Below, piece after piece: positions 13,775 through 36,781 of a DNA stretch of 64,000 bases; position 1 is the stretch's first letter, and each line of letters starts with the position of its first letter. The notes under the pieces were generated by a model. It saw only the letters and a list, made by a program, of their open reading frames with translations. It did not search any database and had not been told where the DNA came from. The position numbers and the translations under genes are program-made. The stretch comes from Macrostomum lignano. Its lineage: Eukaryota. The stretch covers positions 59,700-123,699 of the forward strand of contig NIVC01003038.1 in assembly GCA_002269645.1 (NCBI GenBank). The letters run 5' to 3'.

Positions 13775-16700
13775 ATGTCTGCTGGCTGCATTGAAGCCAA
13801 ATACAAGCCTATTGGCCTGGATCAGCTGTCTGGTGAATACCTCTAATTAACTGTTACTTTGTCTCTATAGGGGCTTTTGATAGTGCTGTTTTCAAATTTA
13901 AGCTACAACCCAACTTGATGTAGCTTAATTCCAAGCACTAGCATACATGCGCAACCTCCAAAATTCGGTCGGCCGTGCGACTTAGTTTTAACGAAAATGC
14001 GACGTAGTTTTTGGCCAAAAATGCGACTTACATGTAAAAGAAACCCTCAAGCAAAATTAACGCAACTTGGTTAAACGGCAGGAGTAACTATGACTGTCTT
14101 TTTAAGCCAAAAAGCCTCGTCATCTACTTAGTACTACTTTGGTATTTATTTGGGTGGGCATTTTTGCGACTTACCTAGGTTGGCCGCCAAATCGGTCGGC
14201 CGACTCAGTCGACTTGCGCATGTATAAGCACCAAGACATAGGGAATGTAGGGTTTTAGGATAGGGAGATTTTTCATCACACTTGATTTTATCAACTCCAA
14301 CTTTAATACTTCGGGTGTGTCATAAGTAATGTCACTGCAGGCTTCTGTCTAAAATATGTAGGCACATGGACTTGTGGGTAGTGTAGCTGCAAAGTATACT
14401 TAGTGAAGCAATACGACCAGTGCATTTGAGACGTGCATAGGTTGTTTATGGCCCAAGCTGTCGCAAGAATACGCCAAGCAGATTTAGCAAGTGCAACGCG
14501 ATGAAAAATCGTCTATGCAGCGAACAAAAATCACCATGAATCTCGACAAGACGCCTGCATCAAGCAGATCCGCAAGGTGTTCAGCAGGCGGGGCTTGAAT
14601 GACATCCTAAACTGCCTGGTTGCTGAGGATGAAAGCTGGCTCCACCTGGATGGCAAGGGCAGCAAGGCAGACAATCGCTGCTGGCTGGGAGCTGGGGACT
14701 CCAGGGCGACTGTGACCAGGAAGTCCATCTCGGACAAGAAGATCATGCTGCTGGTAGCCTTCACGCCAAACAAACGAGTCTCCATCTGCACAACTCCACC
14801 GAACACCAAAGTCGATGGCCAGTATTTTATCGACTTTATCCGGCACACTGGAGACCTCTGGCGCAATCTCCGGTCAAATCCATGTCACCTGGACGAGGTT
14901 CTGTGGCAGATGGACACCGCACGGCCGCACACCTGTAAGGCTTTTTTGAATTTTCTGCCTGCATGGCGAGTGAATATGCTCTGACAGAGTCCCTACAGCC
15001 CGGACTTCAACTTTTGCAAGAGATTCCTGTTCAAATGGCTGAAGGCTGAATTTTCCAAGAAGAGTTTCGCAAACCATGAAGAGGTCAAACAGGCCGCGTT
15101 GCACTGGTTATGGCAGTTGGAGGAAAAACACCTGCAGGCTGAGGTGGACAAGCTGTATGAGCACTGCCAGAGGGTGATTGATATTGGGGGACTCTATGTT
15201 GTTGAGTGGTACAGTTTTGTTCATCTGCGATTGCAAGTTCGTCTGTTTTCACATCAGTGACATTACTTATGACACACCCGAAGTAGAAGCATAAATACCT
15301 ATCTATTTAAATGAAATTTAAAATTGAAAACTAGTTCATCTAAAACCCATTTAGAATAATATTATAAGATCCTTTCAAAACCAACTAATTTATCAGCCAA
15401 AATATTAAATTATAGTTTATTACTTATTCCCTAATTTTACTAGTTAAAAAAACAAGTGCTCTTTTTCCAGAATTTTTTTTAAATAAACTATTCTTGGTGA
15501 CTGCTTTGTAGGGGATTGACAGATGGAGGTTGCCTCACCACTAAAATATTTTTAGCAGTTTTGTCCTTTTGGGCATCCTTTAAGTGCCTGGAAAAGTTTC
15601 AGAAAATTGGAAGCAATTTGTCAACCTAATTACTTGAAGAAGTCCGAATTGTGCCTGGTCCCGCTGTAGCCGGTTTTGCATTCAAGAGGTTTAGATTTTA
15701 ATTTCGGAGAGAAGTACACGTATTCTCAACAACATTGAGCAGTCTCCACCTTTGAGAGTGCGCCGTAAATTCTAGCCCATGGTATTGAGTTTGAAGTGAC
15801 GGATTTGGAAGAGCGGAGGGCGAAGATTAGATGGATTGAAGCTTCCCCCGATTTTCATTGTTTTTTAAAGCATTTTTAATATATCAAAATGGTTGGCCCG
15901 GTGATAGACGCTGGTCGAAGGACACTGATCACTGGGATAAAGAGTGGCGACTTTTCAATGTTGCTGAGTATACTTTTTCAGCGATTTTGCTGGACTTGTG
16001 GTCAGTCCTTGCTGAAGCACAATTCTTAAACTACCAAATAAAAATTGGTTGATATGTACTATAATGAAGTTTCAAATATACAAATAATGTGAAACTGCAG
16101 TCCACGCTAATTGATAAAAAAAACAAATTTAATCTTGTAACGATCAAAAGTCGAAACCAGATAGTTCCATCGATACTTAAGCTGGAACTTATGACTTAGT
16201 CCTAAGTGTGTTTTATAAACATTTATGGCTGGCTAACTTCGATCGTAGCTAAGATCGAGCTTATGCGTTTAGGGAAGATTGACGGCCAGAGACGATTGAC
16301 ATAATAAACCTTGACTAGTCATTACGACCTAAAAATAGAAAGCAACCACTCGATCACGCTCGGCAGCACCGGCGACATCTTGTTCTCCACCTTCAAATCC
16401 ATCTTCGAGGAAGGACTAAATGACTTAGGACAGCTCTCGATGTGTCTAAAAGTTAGGATCGAAGTTGGGGGCTTCAGCCATAGAATGCTATCTTTATAAA
16501 ACACTTTGACCATAAGTTCAATCTTATCTTACTCTAGGTCGCACCTAGGTTGGTTCCCAGCTAAGACTCGCATTTATGTATAAGATAACTGCGAGTCTAA
16601 CTGCGGGCCTGCGGCCCTCGGGGGCTTAAATAAATACATCCCTCAACTCTATGTGTCATCTCACTTAAATTCATGCGCTAAAAATACAACCCGCTAATTC

Positions 16701-33900: not shown

Positions 33901-36781
33901 AGATAGATAGATAGATAGATAGATTGATAGATAGATAGGTAGATAGATAGATAGATGATAGATAGATAGGTAGATAGATAGATAGATAGATAGATAGATA
34001 GATAGATAGATAGATAGATAGATAGATAGATAGATAGATAGATAGATAGATAGATAGATAGATAGATAGATAGATAGATAGATAGATAGATAGATGATAG
34101 ATAGATAGATAGATAGATAGATAGATGATAGATAGATAGGTAGATAGATAGATAGATAGATAGATAGATAGATAGATAGATAGATAGATAGATAGATAGA
34201 TAGATAGATAGATTGATAGATAGATAGGTAGATAGATAGATAGATGATAGATAGATAGGTAGATAGATAGATAGATAGATAGATAGATAGATAGATAGAT
34301 GATAGATAGATAGGTAGATAGATAGATAGATAGATAGATAGATAGATAGATAGATAGATAGATAGATAGATAGATAGATAGATGATAGATAGATAGGTAG
34401 ATAGATAGATAGATAGATAGATAGATAGATAGATAGATAGATAGATAGATAGATAGATAGATAGATAGATAGATAGATAGATAGATTGATAGATAGATAG
34501 GTAGATAGATAGATAGATGATAGATAGATAGGTAGATAGATAGATAGATAGATAGATAGATAGATAGATAGATAGATAGATAGATAGATAGATAGATAGA
34601 TAGATAGATAGATAGATGATAGATAGATAGGTAGATAGATAGATAGATAGATAGATAGATAGATAGATAGATAGATAGATAGATAGATGATAGATAGATA
34701 GGTAGATAGATAGATAGATAGATAGATAGATAGATAGATAGATAGATAGATAGATAGATAGATAGATAGATAGATAGATAGATAGATAGATAGATAGATA
34801 GATAGATAGATAGATAGATAGATAGATAGATAGATAGATGATAGATAGATAGATAGATAGATAGATAGATAGATAGATAGATAGATAGATAGATTGATAG
34901 ATAGATAGATAGATAGATAGATAGATGATAGATAGATAGGTAGATAGATAGATAGATAGATAGATAGATAGATAGATAGATAGATAGATAGATAGATAGA
35001 TAGATAGATAGATCGATAGACAGACGTCAACTAATGTACGTGATGAACGAATTGCATGTATATTTCAGACAAGTACTAACAATGCTGTTTTCGTCCTGTC
35101 TGTGGACAATTGGTGACAAGGAAATGTGCAGCAAGTGAGTCTCATTTTAAATAAACTATGCACTGGAGCCTATTTAAGACACTCGCCAAGCAATCCGCCT
35201 TGCAGAGTTCTGTTCGAATCCACCCAGGGAACATATTCCCTGCGAGCTGGCGCTGACAGCAACTATGTCCTGTCTGTTCGGTCGCAAAATATTGTTGCTA
35301 AGCTTGTAATAAGAGTCGATAAACAGAGCGACTGTAAGGTGAGTACTGTAAGAGGGAGTGCTGAGCTTTCAAGCAACCACCAGGGCTCTCCTTTCCCCCC
35401 CCCGTTCCACTTTCTCACGCCTACACGGGTTGGGTGAACCAGGCTTATCGATTTTCTTAATTTGCTCATCATAACACCAACACATTTTCCGGCCTACGCC
35501 GACCTCAAGCCCACTACTGTATTGCTATTGGCTGGCTACTGTGCGTGTTGGTTGGCTGAAGCTTATCGATTTTCTATTTGGTTGATTAGTCCGGCAAGTT
35601 ATATTGACTTGTAGCTGCATGGTCGATATCCTACTTAATCAGTCAAAATTTTCCGTTGCAGAATCAATTCTACTTGGCTAACTCTGGTCCTTCCGGCATC
35701 GTCAAGTACGACTCGCTGGAGGATCTGCTGGGCAGTTTGCACAGCTCCAGATTCCCAGTTACCGTGTCCAAGAATAAAATTTTGACGACTCTGCAGACGC
35801 CGTATCAGAACTCTAAGTCAGTTGCTAGATTTGATGGAGTTTTGTCGATCACCTTAACTTGGTCTCGTGTTTATTTCGATGTAAGTACATTCACTTCTAT
35901 TCATTTTAGAGCCTGCAAAGCCAAGCAACAATCGCTGCTGCTCGACCCGCTGAGGCAGCGGATTTTTCACCGCGGCCAGGAAGATCAAGCCGTCAGGGCG
36001 CTACGACTGCCCAGCACTCAGAGTGGCGCTTTCGTTGTGTGGCTCACCTCCGCCACTGAGGTCTCTCTGATGGTGCGCGGCCAGGGACAGCGAGTTCTCA
36101 GCTTCAAAGTTGTCTGCACTCCTACCGGATGCCGGGCCCTGCCGGAGGTGGGGGCTGGGGATGCTGGGGTGTTGATGAATAGGATGTTGGGGTAATGGAA
36201 GGGGATGCTGAGTAATTCATGGAGATGATCCTGGGGTAATGATGGAGGAGATGTTGGCTGCTGCTGGAGATGATAATGGGATGAGATAATTGATGGAGGG
36301 GATTGCTAGGGTGTTAATGGAGGGAGTTGCTGAAATCCTGCGGCTTGTTGGAGTTGCTCAGATGCTTTAAGCCAAAGGTCATAGGGGACGCTGATTTCTT
36401 AGGCTAGATACGAAATAGATAGATAGATACCGGTGAAAGCGTAGCTGGCTTTTAGGGCAGATGACTTTCCTTAGGATACTACTAACACTAGCGACTGTAC
36501 AAGGTCAGAACCTACATGTAGTTTGTTTAACAGTTTCTTTTTTTTCTTTGTTGCGTCCCCAACAGGGGGGCGCAGGTTGCTAGTCCACTATACTAAAAAT
36601 AACTTATCTTAAAAATCAAATCCAACTGTGATTTCAGCGCGCTGTTTACCTGGAGAAATTACCCGAACTGAAATTCGACAGCATCGAGTCTCTGGTTGCA
36701 CACCTGCAGTGCAATCCAGACTTGCTGATGCCGGAGCTGCCAGGCAAGCTGACACAGCCAATCAGCTGCCGAAATCTGTGA
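24978..36781 (+). CDS. PH, Pro-rich/Tyr-motif and triple SH2-like adaptor protein, paralogue B (about 635 aa)
   Basis: Exons 24978-25020, 25724-25831, 25935-26034, 30559-31188, 31301-31591, 35069-35134, 35206-35338, 35662-35816, 35910-36147 and 36638-36781 give one open frame of 1908 nt. Intron phases match paralogue A at all nine introns. Motifs: GGYICR, HWAVLQSDCLLLFD, HLG..SNWQ; DPGTFLLAG..FDTLEQLVFHYH; LWTIGDK..QGTYSLRAG..YDSLEDLL; QSGAFVVW..FDSIESLVAHL..KLTQPI. Confidence 0.85.
26217..27982 (-). mobile_element. Ty3/Gypsy LTR retrotransposon remnant (short 5' LTR-like end, gag, protease, partial RT; 3'-truncated)
   Basis: gag start MANFISLPLPEPFNP..WAAWSGRFDDFIAASGI at about 27833, aspartic protease MMVDSGAICNIM, and RT fragments (IPTLDEV..GATLFSELDICKAFYQ; VLWIHDGVILY), with many stops and frameshifts. 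The minus strand begins TGTAGG near 27981. Confidence 0.88.
27983..30445. repeat. 29/42-bp compound minisatellite (about 2.45 kb, intronic)
   Basis: 29-bp unit CTCTGACCTACATTCTCGACCCATT(A/G)GTC, and a 42-bp variant carrying an extra GACCTACATTCTC, arranged in alternating blocks. Confidence 0.95.
31611..35022. repeat. (GATA)n microsatellite array, about 3.4 kb, intronic
   Basis: Continuous GATA repeats with recurring variants (GATAGGTAGATA, GATGATA, GATCGATA). This is the source of the spurious 793-aa SIYL ORF. Confidence 0.98.

Follow-up and report, generated by a model that had tools for sequence, protein, structure and literature searches.

SH2 adaptors wire tyrosine-kinase signalling in animals and, to our knowledge, the architectures known so far are limited to one SH2 domain or two, nearly always with the phosphotyrosine pocket intact. 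Can a protein with three SH2 domains in a row, and no enzyme attached to them, be a functional adaptor? The question is raised by two neighbouring genes, here called A and B, in a stretch of 64,000 nucleotides (nt) from the flatworm Macrostomum lignano (assembly GCA_002269645.1, contig NIVC01003038.1, positions 59,700 to 123,699 of the forward strand). We refer to this whole stretch as the window and count positions from its first letter. An earlier reading of the letters (hereafter the original prediction) had assigned positions 13775-36781 to two 10-exon genes, each encoding an N-terminal PH domain, a linker rich in proline and tyrosine motifs, and three consecutive SH2 folds. Following up this proposal, we find it likely that A and B are two functional paralogous genes for enzyme-less adaptors or scaffolds, composed of a PH-like domain, a linker with PxxP and acidic-tyrosine motifs and three SH2-derived domains, and that they belong to a multigene family detected only in M. 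lignano.

The window is eukaryotic DNA, and a bacterial-style list of open reading frames (ORFs) shows almost nothing in this region. Models were built from stop-to-stop translations, a translated comparison of both halves of the region and the enumeration of splice sites, followed by exon assembly. Both of the proposed 10-exon genes could be rebuilt in this way on the plus strand, each with an ORF that is intact over all 10 exons. Gene A (13775-23429) encodes 746 amino acids (aa), or 743 aa if the junction of public models is adopted for intron 4, and gene B (24978-36781) encodes 635 aa. The first exons, each with its ATG, lie at 13775-13832 in A (MSAGCIEAKYKPIGLDQLS, followed by the phase-1 donor gtgaat) and at 24978-25020 in B (MDSAALKARLKNLS), and each start is the same in the public model of the respective protein. 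Every one of the matching exon sizes noted at the outset was recovered (100/100 nt for exon 3, 300/291 for exon 5, 60/66 for exon 6, 130/133 for exon 7, 152/155 for exon 8 and 235/238 for exon 9), as were all of the motifs, whether shared between the genes (GYICR, HLG..SNWQ, W..GDK..C) or located in only one of them (EEMIYTTL, EQTYETP, DNTYNEA, SIYD). The claim of identical intron phases was reproduced as well (1,1,2,2,2,2,0,2,0 in both genes), provided that intron 4 of A uses a GC-AG donor at 20346, and the very low identity between the two proteins was measured at 23-28%. Consensus splice sites are present at every junction of both genes except A intron 4. An extra small exon between exons 3 and 4 (18411-18520 in A, 26036-26120 in B) was considered and dropped because exon 3 joins the large fourth exon in phase, completing the PH-like alignment in both genes.

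Both proteins have counterparts in public databases. When the C-terminal 380 residues of B were used as query, the M. lignano protein BOX15_Mlig002108g2 was retrieved from GenBank (632 aa; hereafter P0001), to which B is identical at 627 of 632 positions (99%) and with which it shares all nine junctions. Underlying the GenBank annotation of M. lignano is an RNA-seq transcriptome that was assembled under guidance of the genome with StringTie/TACO and then passed through TBONE (PMC5730564), and B is therefore supported by transcripts. Gene A corresponds to the UniRef model A0A1I8FWC5 (hereafter P0005; 730 of 735 positions identical). A second UniRef model of A (P0010, 'Splicing factor, arginine/serine-rich 1') is a wrong fusion in which exons of an upstream SRSF1-like gene are joined to A from exon 4 onwards; the splicing-factor gene itself lies on the plus strand at 4271-4432 and 11061-11426 (RRM_1, E = 4.5e-14). 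The proteins are deposited in NCBI and UniProt, unreviewed and under the automatic name 'SH2 domain-containing protein'. The 'g2' in the locus tag had also led us to consider A and B as a single trans-spliced unit, an idea we dropped since near-identical copies located on different contigs are numbered in the same way.

Where do the two genes come from? We searched 1.84 billion representative proteins exhaustively with phmmer, taking the C-terminus of B as query, and obtained six matches at E < 1e-3, all of them from M. lignano, and no relative from outside Macrostomum at that threshold. In a word-indexed database the C-terminus of A matched nothing and a family profile returned only copies of B. 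Absence of the family outside Macrostomum is thus supported at single-sequence sensitivity, which falls short of proof and tempers the claim of a lineage-restricted family. Within M. lignano there are at least six paralogue lineages, A to F. Paralogue C (722 aa, BOX15_Mlig007324g1) is located on another contig, D is embedded in a chimeric model of 2139 aa and has a linker of ~25 PPKLPPSSTE repeats, and E and F are known as fragments. D, E and F form a group with 36-52% identity, B shares 21-27% with all other paralogues, and A is closest to C (35%, compared with 23% to B). Because A is nearer to C than to B, the pair is part of an old family and not a simple tandem duplicate. The picture of a lineage-specific, anciently duplicated and fast-evolving group therefore needs amending in one respect: the family is old and fast-evolving and its detectable relatives are all from M. 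lignano, but the neighbours in the window did not arise from one another by a simple ancient tandem duplication. Around paralogue C (locus L002, NIVC01000112.1) we find no second family member within 10 kb, the neighbours being an HSP70/HYOU1-like gene and a RhoGEF-PH gene, and the tandem arrangement is therefore specific to A and B.

Paralogue C also bears on the one irregular junction. No good phase-2 GT donor was found for intron 4 of A; the only strong phase-2 donor there is a perfect GC-AG donor (AG/GCAAGT) at 20346, which ends exon 4 at 20345, yields the 300-nt exon 5 and places the intron at the position and in the phase seen in B and in paralogue C at its own locus. Public models of A instead combine a GT at 20341 with an AG at 21241, in phase 0, so that exon 4 ends at 20340, exon 5 measures 296 nt and the protein is 3 aa shorter; relative to the GC-AG solution, the GT donor lies 5 nt upstream and is weaker, and the acceptor is shifted downstream by 4 nt. 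The junction in the public models was probably mis-set by gene prediction that allows for GT donors only. Comparison with P0005 and paralogue C led us to abandon two further donors entertained for exon 4, at 20309 and 20349, in favour of the GC at 20346 or the GT that public models use at 20341. An ORF at 20955-21116 that resembles the C-terminus of an SH2 domain is intronic in all models and was put down to chance.

Having established the gene models, we asked whether the C-terminal half of each protein really consists of SH2 domains. The first putative domain, SH2-1, begins with a helical region at the end of exon 4 and has its core in exon 5 (21237-21536 in A, 31301-31591 in B). SH2-2 starts in exon 6 (21633-21692 with WCLGDKPLC in A, 35069-35134 with WTIGDKEMC in B), continues with strands betaB to betaD in exon 7 (21769-21898 and 35206-35338) and has its C-terminal half in exon 8 (22421-22572 in A, running from KFDSLEKFLMHYH to MPCQLS; 35662-35816 in B, running from KYDSLEDLL to TPYQNS). 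Taken one sequence at a time, these regions give little encouragement. Pfam reports a sub-threshold SH2 match for A, in SH2-2 only (18.7 bits against a cutoff of 21), and no match at all for B, and a single-sequence search of the PDB with paralogue E likewise found nothing. To these points, which count against an SH2 assignment, two caveats on method must be added: the reference SH2 and PH alignments used below were compiled by hand, so that minor errors in them are possible, and the alignments supplied to AlphaFold2 were shallow (5-12 rows from a single species).

The family as a whole gives a clearer answer. Pfam SH2 (PF00017) matches 8 of 12 family sequences, with a best E of 3.2e-7. When family profiles were built from per-domain alignments of the paralogues and compared with the PDB, the domain 2 profile gave 139 matches at E up to 1, the best 60 of which are all SH2-domain proteins, headed by VAV2 (E = 9.5e-7) and followed by the SH2 domains of p85-alpha and PLC-gamma1 (E about 1e-6). 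The domain 1 profile gave 61 matches over the same range, and again the best 60 are all SH2-domain proteins, with Src (1.1e-3) and SH3BP2 (2cr4, 1.8e-3) at the top. Aligned with each other by hhalign, domains 1 and 2 score a probability of 96.8% and are therefore mutually homologous. When the three family domains are compared with a reference set of ten aligned canonical SH2 domains, they reach 96.4%, 97.5% and 93.1%, respectively, with scores of 43-67 where shuffled profiles attain 15.8 at most, and cross-controls against the PH reference stay at 0.1-0.2%. Structure prediction agrees. In an AlphaFold2 model of P0001, the orthologue of B, made with a 12-row family alignment, residues 254-616 fold into three alpha-beta-alpha modules with predicted local distance difference test (pLDDT) values of 60-88, and the top Foldseek matches are the tandem SH2 domains of SYK, PLC-gamma1/2, SHP2 and ZAP-70 (E ~1e-8, probability 1.00, 215-360 columns). 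The arrangement expected of an SH2 domain, with a central beta-sheet between alphaA and alphaB, is thereby found for at least two of the modules. On the combined evidence of family profiles, Pfam matches to paralogues and predicted structure, the case for SH2-1 and SH2-2 as real SH2 domains is solid, and the blank returned by Pfam for B shows that profile libraries currently miss them.

Domain 3 is a harder case. Three quarters of it, from the N-terminal side, are encoded by exon 9 of A (22653-22887), and the corresponding exon of B (35910-36147) holds a linker helix and the elements alphaA to betaD; exon 10 supplies the alphaB signature, EFESMDKLLMY followed by the stop in A (23322-23429) and KFDSIESLVAH followed by a C-terminal tail and the stop in B (36638-36781). 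One might suppose that A and B are PH/tandem-SH2 adaptors that end in a new kind of domain with no relationship to SH2. Several observations would fit such a scenario and speak against a third SH2 fold: the family profile of domain 3 has no significant sequence match in the PDB, its best SH2 match being BMX at E = 1.3; an isolated model of the domain is of low confidence (pLDDT 57) and elicits neither SH2 nor any other meaningful match from Foldseek; and no family member carries the beta-B5 arginine in this domain. Profile-profile comparison argues otherwise. The 93.1% obtained against the SH2 reference corresponds to E = 3.3e-7 and a score of 42.9, in a register that is kept from alphaA to alphaB, whereas 60 shuffles reach 15.7 at most and the PH reference yields 0.2%. 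Domain 3 also aligns in register with domain 2 (score 32.9) and domain 1 (24.8), exceeding all of 200 column shuffles in either comparison (maxima of 17.0 and 14.4). Domain 3 of A, B and C contains the alphaB signature F-[DE]-S-[ILM]-[ED]-x-L-[VLM], which recurs in weaker form in D and F, and residues 530-610 of the full-length AlphaFold2 model follow the order alpha-beta-beta-beta-beta-alpha. We therefore regard an unrelated third module as unlikely; judged by profile-profile comparison, domain 3 derives from SH2 and has diverged strongly. As regards the proposal of three consecutive SH2 folds, then, two hold as stated, while the third is supported as SH2-derived by these profile comparisons.

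Do these domains still read phosphotyrosine? Binding of phosphotyrosine depends on a contact made by the arginine at beta-B5, in the FLVR motif, and we read the residue at this position by aligning each domain to Src and VAV2. In gene A it is His in SH2-1 (GSFVVHG, 21259-21279), Leu in SH2-2 (GTFALLV) and Ser in SH2-3 (GGSLVVS). In gene B it is Ala in SH2-1 (GTFLLAG) and Trp in SH2-3 (GAFVVWL), and only SH2-2 keeps the arginine (GTYSLRA, 35228-35248). Five of the six SH2-like domains in the window have therefore lost it, a point that the original prediction overlooked. The pattern extends across the family, with paralogue C devoid of the arginine in every domain and D, E and F retaining it in domains 1 and 2. 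It follows that the window encodes three SH2-derived domains per protein and at most one canonical reader of phosphotyrosine, which, to go by this residue, is likely to be SH2-2 of B.

A less flattering explanation of these losses is that one or both genes are duplicates in decay or were wrongly predicted, the genome being redundant, rich in repeats and polyploid, so that SH2 residues disappear under relaxed constraint. Besides the missing arginines, such a history would be compatible with introns full of transposons and satellites, with the ambiguous junction of A intron 4 and with the fact that the GenBank annotation around a second genomic copy of the locus is without gene A. However, that second copy (L001, in the same assembly) has the same A-B tandem: its A exons all align to the window without gaps, its B exons show one in-frame indel of 9 nt in the linker, and there are no frameshifts. 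Intact 10-exon ORFs thus occur in two genomic copies, with consensus splice sites everywhere bar A intron 4. Differences between the copies are predominantly synonymous, both in A (8 synonymous versus 3 non-synonymous, p = 9e-4) and in B (9 versus 5, p = 2e-3), and this significant excess indicates purifying selection on both genes. To this must be added the RNA-seq-based annotation behind B. Finally, domains without the arginine are conserved across paralogues that have diverged to 21-35% identity, which points to long-term retention. Decay or misprediction strikes us, in consequence, as highly improbable.

If the genes are functional, what might the arginine-less domains be for? SH2 domains that lack the invariant beta-B5 arginine occur in TYK2, RIN2 (His) and SH2D5 (Trp), where they are thought to act as phosphorylation-independent interaction modules or as structural modules. 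The likeness extends to the substituting residues, His being found in SH2-1 of A and Trp in SH2-3 of B, but TYK2, RIN2 and SH2D5 are single exceptions in canonical families, whereas here the loss affects most domains and, in the case of domain 3, the whole family. One could take this further and imagine the family as a flatworm-specific invention, its SH2 fold triplicated and largely repurposed to give a trivalent scaffold whose arginine-less modules bind ligands that are unphosphorylated or carry other modifications, or hold the protein in a locked state by intramolecular contacts, and in which the remaining canonical pockets (one in B, two in D to F) serve as a phosphotyrosine switch. Such a scheme would amount to a new logic for SH2 adaptors; as a specific account we consider it unlikely. 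We prefer the more modest reading of A and B as adaptors or scaffolds with three SH2-derived domains, to whose remaining parts we now turn.

The PH-like region begins in exon 2 (17883-18026 in A, with junctions as in P0005 and GYICR at 17930-17944; 25724-25831 in B, GYICR at 25771-25785). Strands beta2 to beta4 would be encoded by exon 3 of A (18117-18216, beginning FVLYYAVLRAKQLFLFHNED), which aligns with exon 3 of B (25935-26034), and the region ends in exon 4 (19392-20345 in A, 30559-31188 in B) with the motif HLGWSRHSNWQ in A (19528-19560) and HLGCEPGSNWQ in B (30650-30682). Much here cautions against calling it a PH domain outright. Pfam PH (PF00169) matched neither A nor B nor any of the 12 family members; the top PDB matches of the N-terminal family profile are PH domains, but with E values of 0.063-1 (paralogue C against the Tiam1 PH domain: 0.36); and, where a PH fold has a beta-sandwich of seven strands closed by a C-terminal helix with an invariant tryptophan, AlphaFold2 predicts four strands and one helix (residues 124-137), but at a pLDDT of 25-37. 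Likewise, hhalign assigns a probability of 4.5% against the PH reference, with a score of 21.0 that nonetheless lies above every shuffle (maximum 15.1). On the other side, a tryptophan at the predicted C-terminal helix is invariant across the family (SNWQ, YSWE, GRWR), and UniRef has given fragments of paralogue C the automatic name 'PH domain-containing protein'. An N-terminal PH domain, as originally claimed, is probable on the strength of the PH domains that top the PDB list and the invariant tryptophan, and the claim goes through in this reduced form, with every individual match below significance.

The disordered linker occupies the middle of exon 4, and the PxxP and tyrosine motifs attributed to it, the latter acidic, are present in both genes. 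Gene A has EEMIYTTL (19867-19890), EQTYETP (19957-19977) and PxxP tracts at 19993-20031 and 20086-20106; gene B has RPPPPPVP, DNTYNEA (30860-30880), LPPPPPPVPPPQP and SIYD (31031-31042). Among the proline motifs, RPTPPIP and RPPPPPVP, along with PPLPPK in paralogues, resemble class I/II ligands, and tyrosines in an acidic context recur in paralogue C (DEAIYDDA, EDVYDEA, EDHYEIP). Together, the PH-like domain, the linker and the three SH2-like modules cover the whole of A and B; Pfam matched no kinase, phosphatase or lipase family, in agreement with the proposed lack of a catalytic domain.

This order of parts is also that of SH3BP2 (3BP2), which starts with a PH domain, continues with a proline-rich linker that binds SH3 domains and contains phosphorylatable tyrosines, and finishes with an SH2 domain, likewise without a catalytic domain. 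Could A and B simply be divergent flatworm orthologues of SH3BP2 in which the SH2 domain was triplicated, and hence members of a known family? Apart from the shared layout, the domain 1 profile places the SH2 domain of SH3BP2 second among its PDB matches. This SH2 domain stands there, however, barely above Src, Abl, Tensin-2 and Nck, one of many equally weak matches; domain 2 is nearest to VAV2, p85 and PLC-gamma; the PH profile search does not retrieve SH3BP2, so that similarity between the PH regions is not detected; and the exhaustive search gave no match from outside Macrostomum at E < 1e-3. SH3BP2, moreover, has one SH2 domain with its FLVR arginine intact, while A and B have three SH2-derived domains, mostly without it. 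Orthology with SH3BP2 therefore appears distinctly improbable, and a separate family, detected only in M. lignano, remains the better description.

Other known systems share fewer parts. SYK/ZAP-70, SHP-1/2, PLC-gamma and PI3K p85 carry consecutive SH2 domains in one chain, and the Foldseek matches to SYK, ZAP-70, SHP2 and PLC-gamma span two domains of our model, but in all of these proteins two phosphotyrosine-binding SH2 domains are attached to, or regulate, a catalytic unit. A and B have three domains, mostly with degenerate pockets, and no enzyme, and do not belong with them. STAP-1/STAP-2 and SH2B/APS/Lnk resemble A and B in bringing together PH and SH2 domains as well as tyrosine and proline motifs. 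They act as docking proteins downstream of tyrosine kinases, but they have a single SH2 domain and different linker and dimerisation elements, and no sequence relationship to them was detected in any of our searches. A search of the literature brought up no described triple-SH2 adaptor, as the original prediction had supposed, and the sole paper linking Macrostomum with SH2 concerns Vav.

How might such proteins work? We infer from sequence features that A and B could provide platforms for docking in signalling by tyrosine kinases. The tyrosines of the linker would be likely kinase substrates and, once phosphorylated, could recruit other SH2 proteins; YNEA in B matches the YxN pattern of Grb2-type motifs. 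SH3 proteins, in turn, might be recruited by the proline tracts. Gene B could in addition bind a phosphotyrosine ligand through SH2-2, while the domains without arginine would more likely serve as phosphorylation-independent interaction modules or structural modules. A run of three SH2-derived domains that have mostly lost the arginine would broaden the range of SH2 adaptors known so far, and the passage from arginine-intact D, E and F to fully arginine-less A and C would provide a natural series in which to study how phosphotyrosine dependence is lost or altered in SH2 domains. The reach of these findings is limited in that the family has so far been seen in one species, and that the proteins already exist as unreviewed database entries. 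Since RNA interference, in situ hybridisation and transgenesis are available in M. lignano (PMC5730564), the function of the genes is directly testable.

The surroundings of the two genes are rich in repeats and mobile elements. Intron 5 of B is almost entirely an (AGAT)n microsatellite (31610-35024, ~859 copies), which explains both an extreme GC/AT skew and a minus-strand ORF of 793 aa that reads 'SIYLSIYL'. Satellites are found in intron 3 of B (28022-30443, a 29-bp unit repeated 85 times), in intron 7 of A (21947-22339, a 31-bp unit, 12.6 times) and between the genes (23763-24501, an 11-bp unit, 67 times). Gene B spans 11.8 kb here and 7.3 kb in the other assembly copy, and these satellites account for most of the length difference between the copies. 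Among transposon remnants, intron 1 of A contains a Crypton- or DIRS-like tyrosine-recombinase fragment on the plus strand (16875-17225; Phage_integrase, E = 5.8e-10), and intron 3 of B contains an aspartyl protease of a retro-element on the minus strand (26835-27341). ORFs at 14505-15257 look transposase-like by eye and have no Pfam match. Downstream of the pair follow a reverse-transcriptase ORF (41140-42654, minus strand) and one or more genes for type IV collagen, also on the minus strand, with long Gly-X-Y exons and a C4/NC1 domain, at 46443-47954, 48576-49793 and 50582-51301 (Collagen, E = 5.4e-50; C4, E = 1.9e-33). Lastly, a short repeat is common to 23032-23190, near the end of A, and 25427-25683, immediately ahead of exon 2 of B; with ~40-50% translated identity and an exact stretch of 11 aa, it is probably a fragment of a dispersed repeat.

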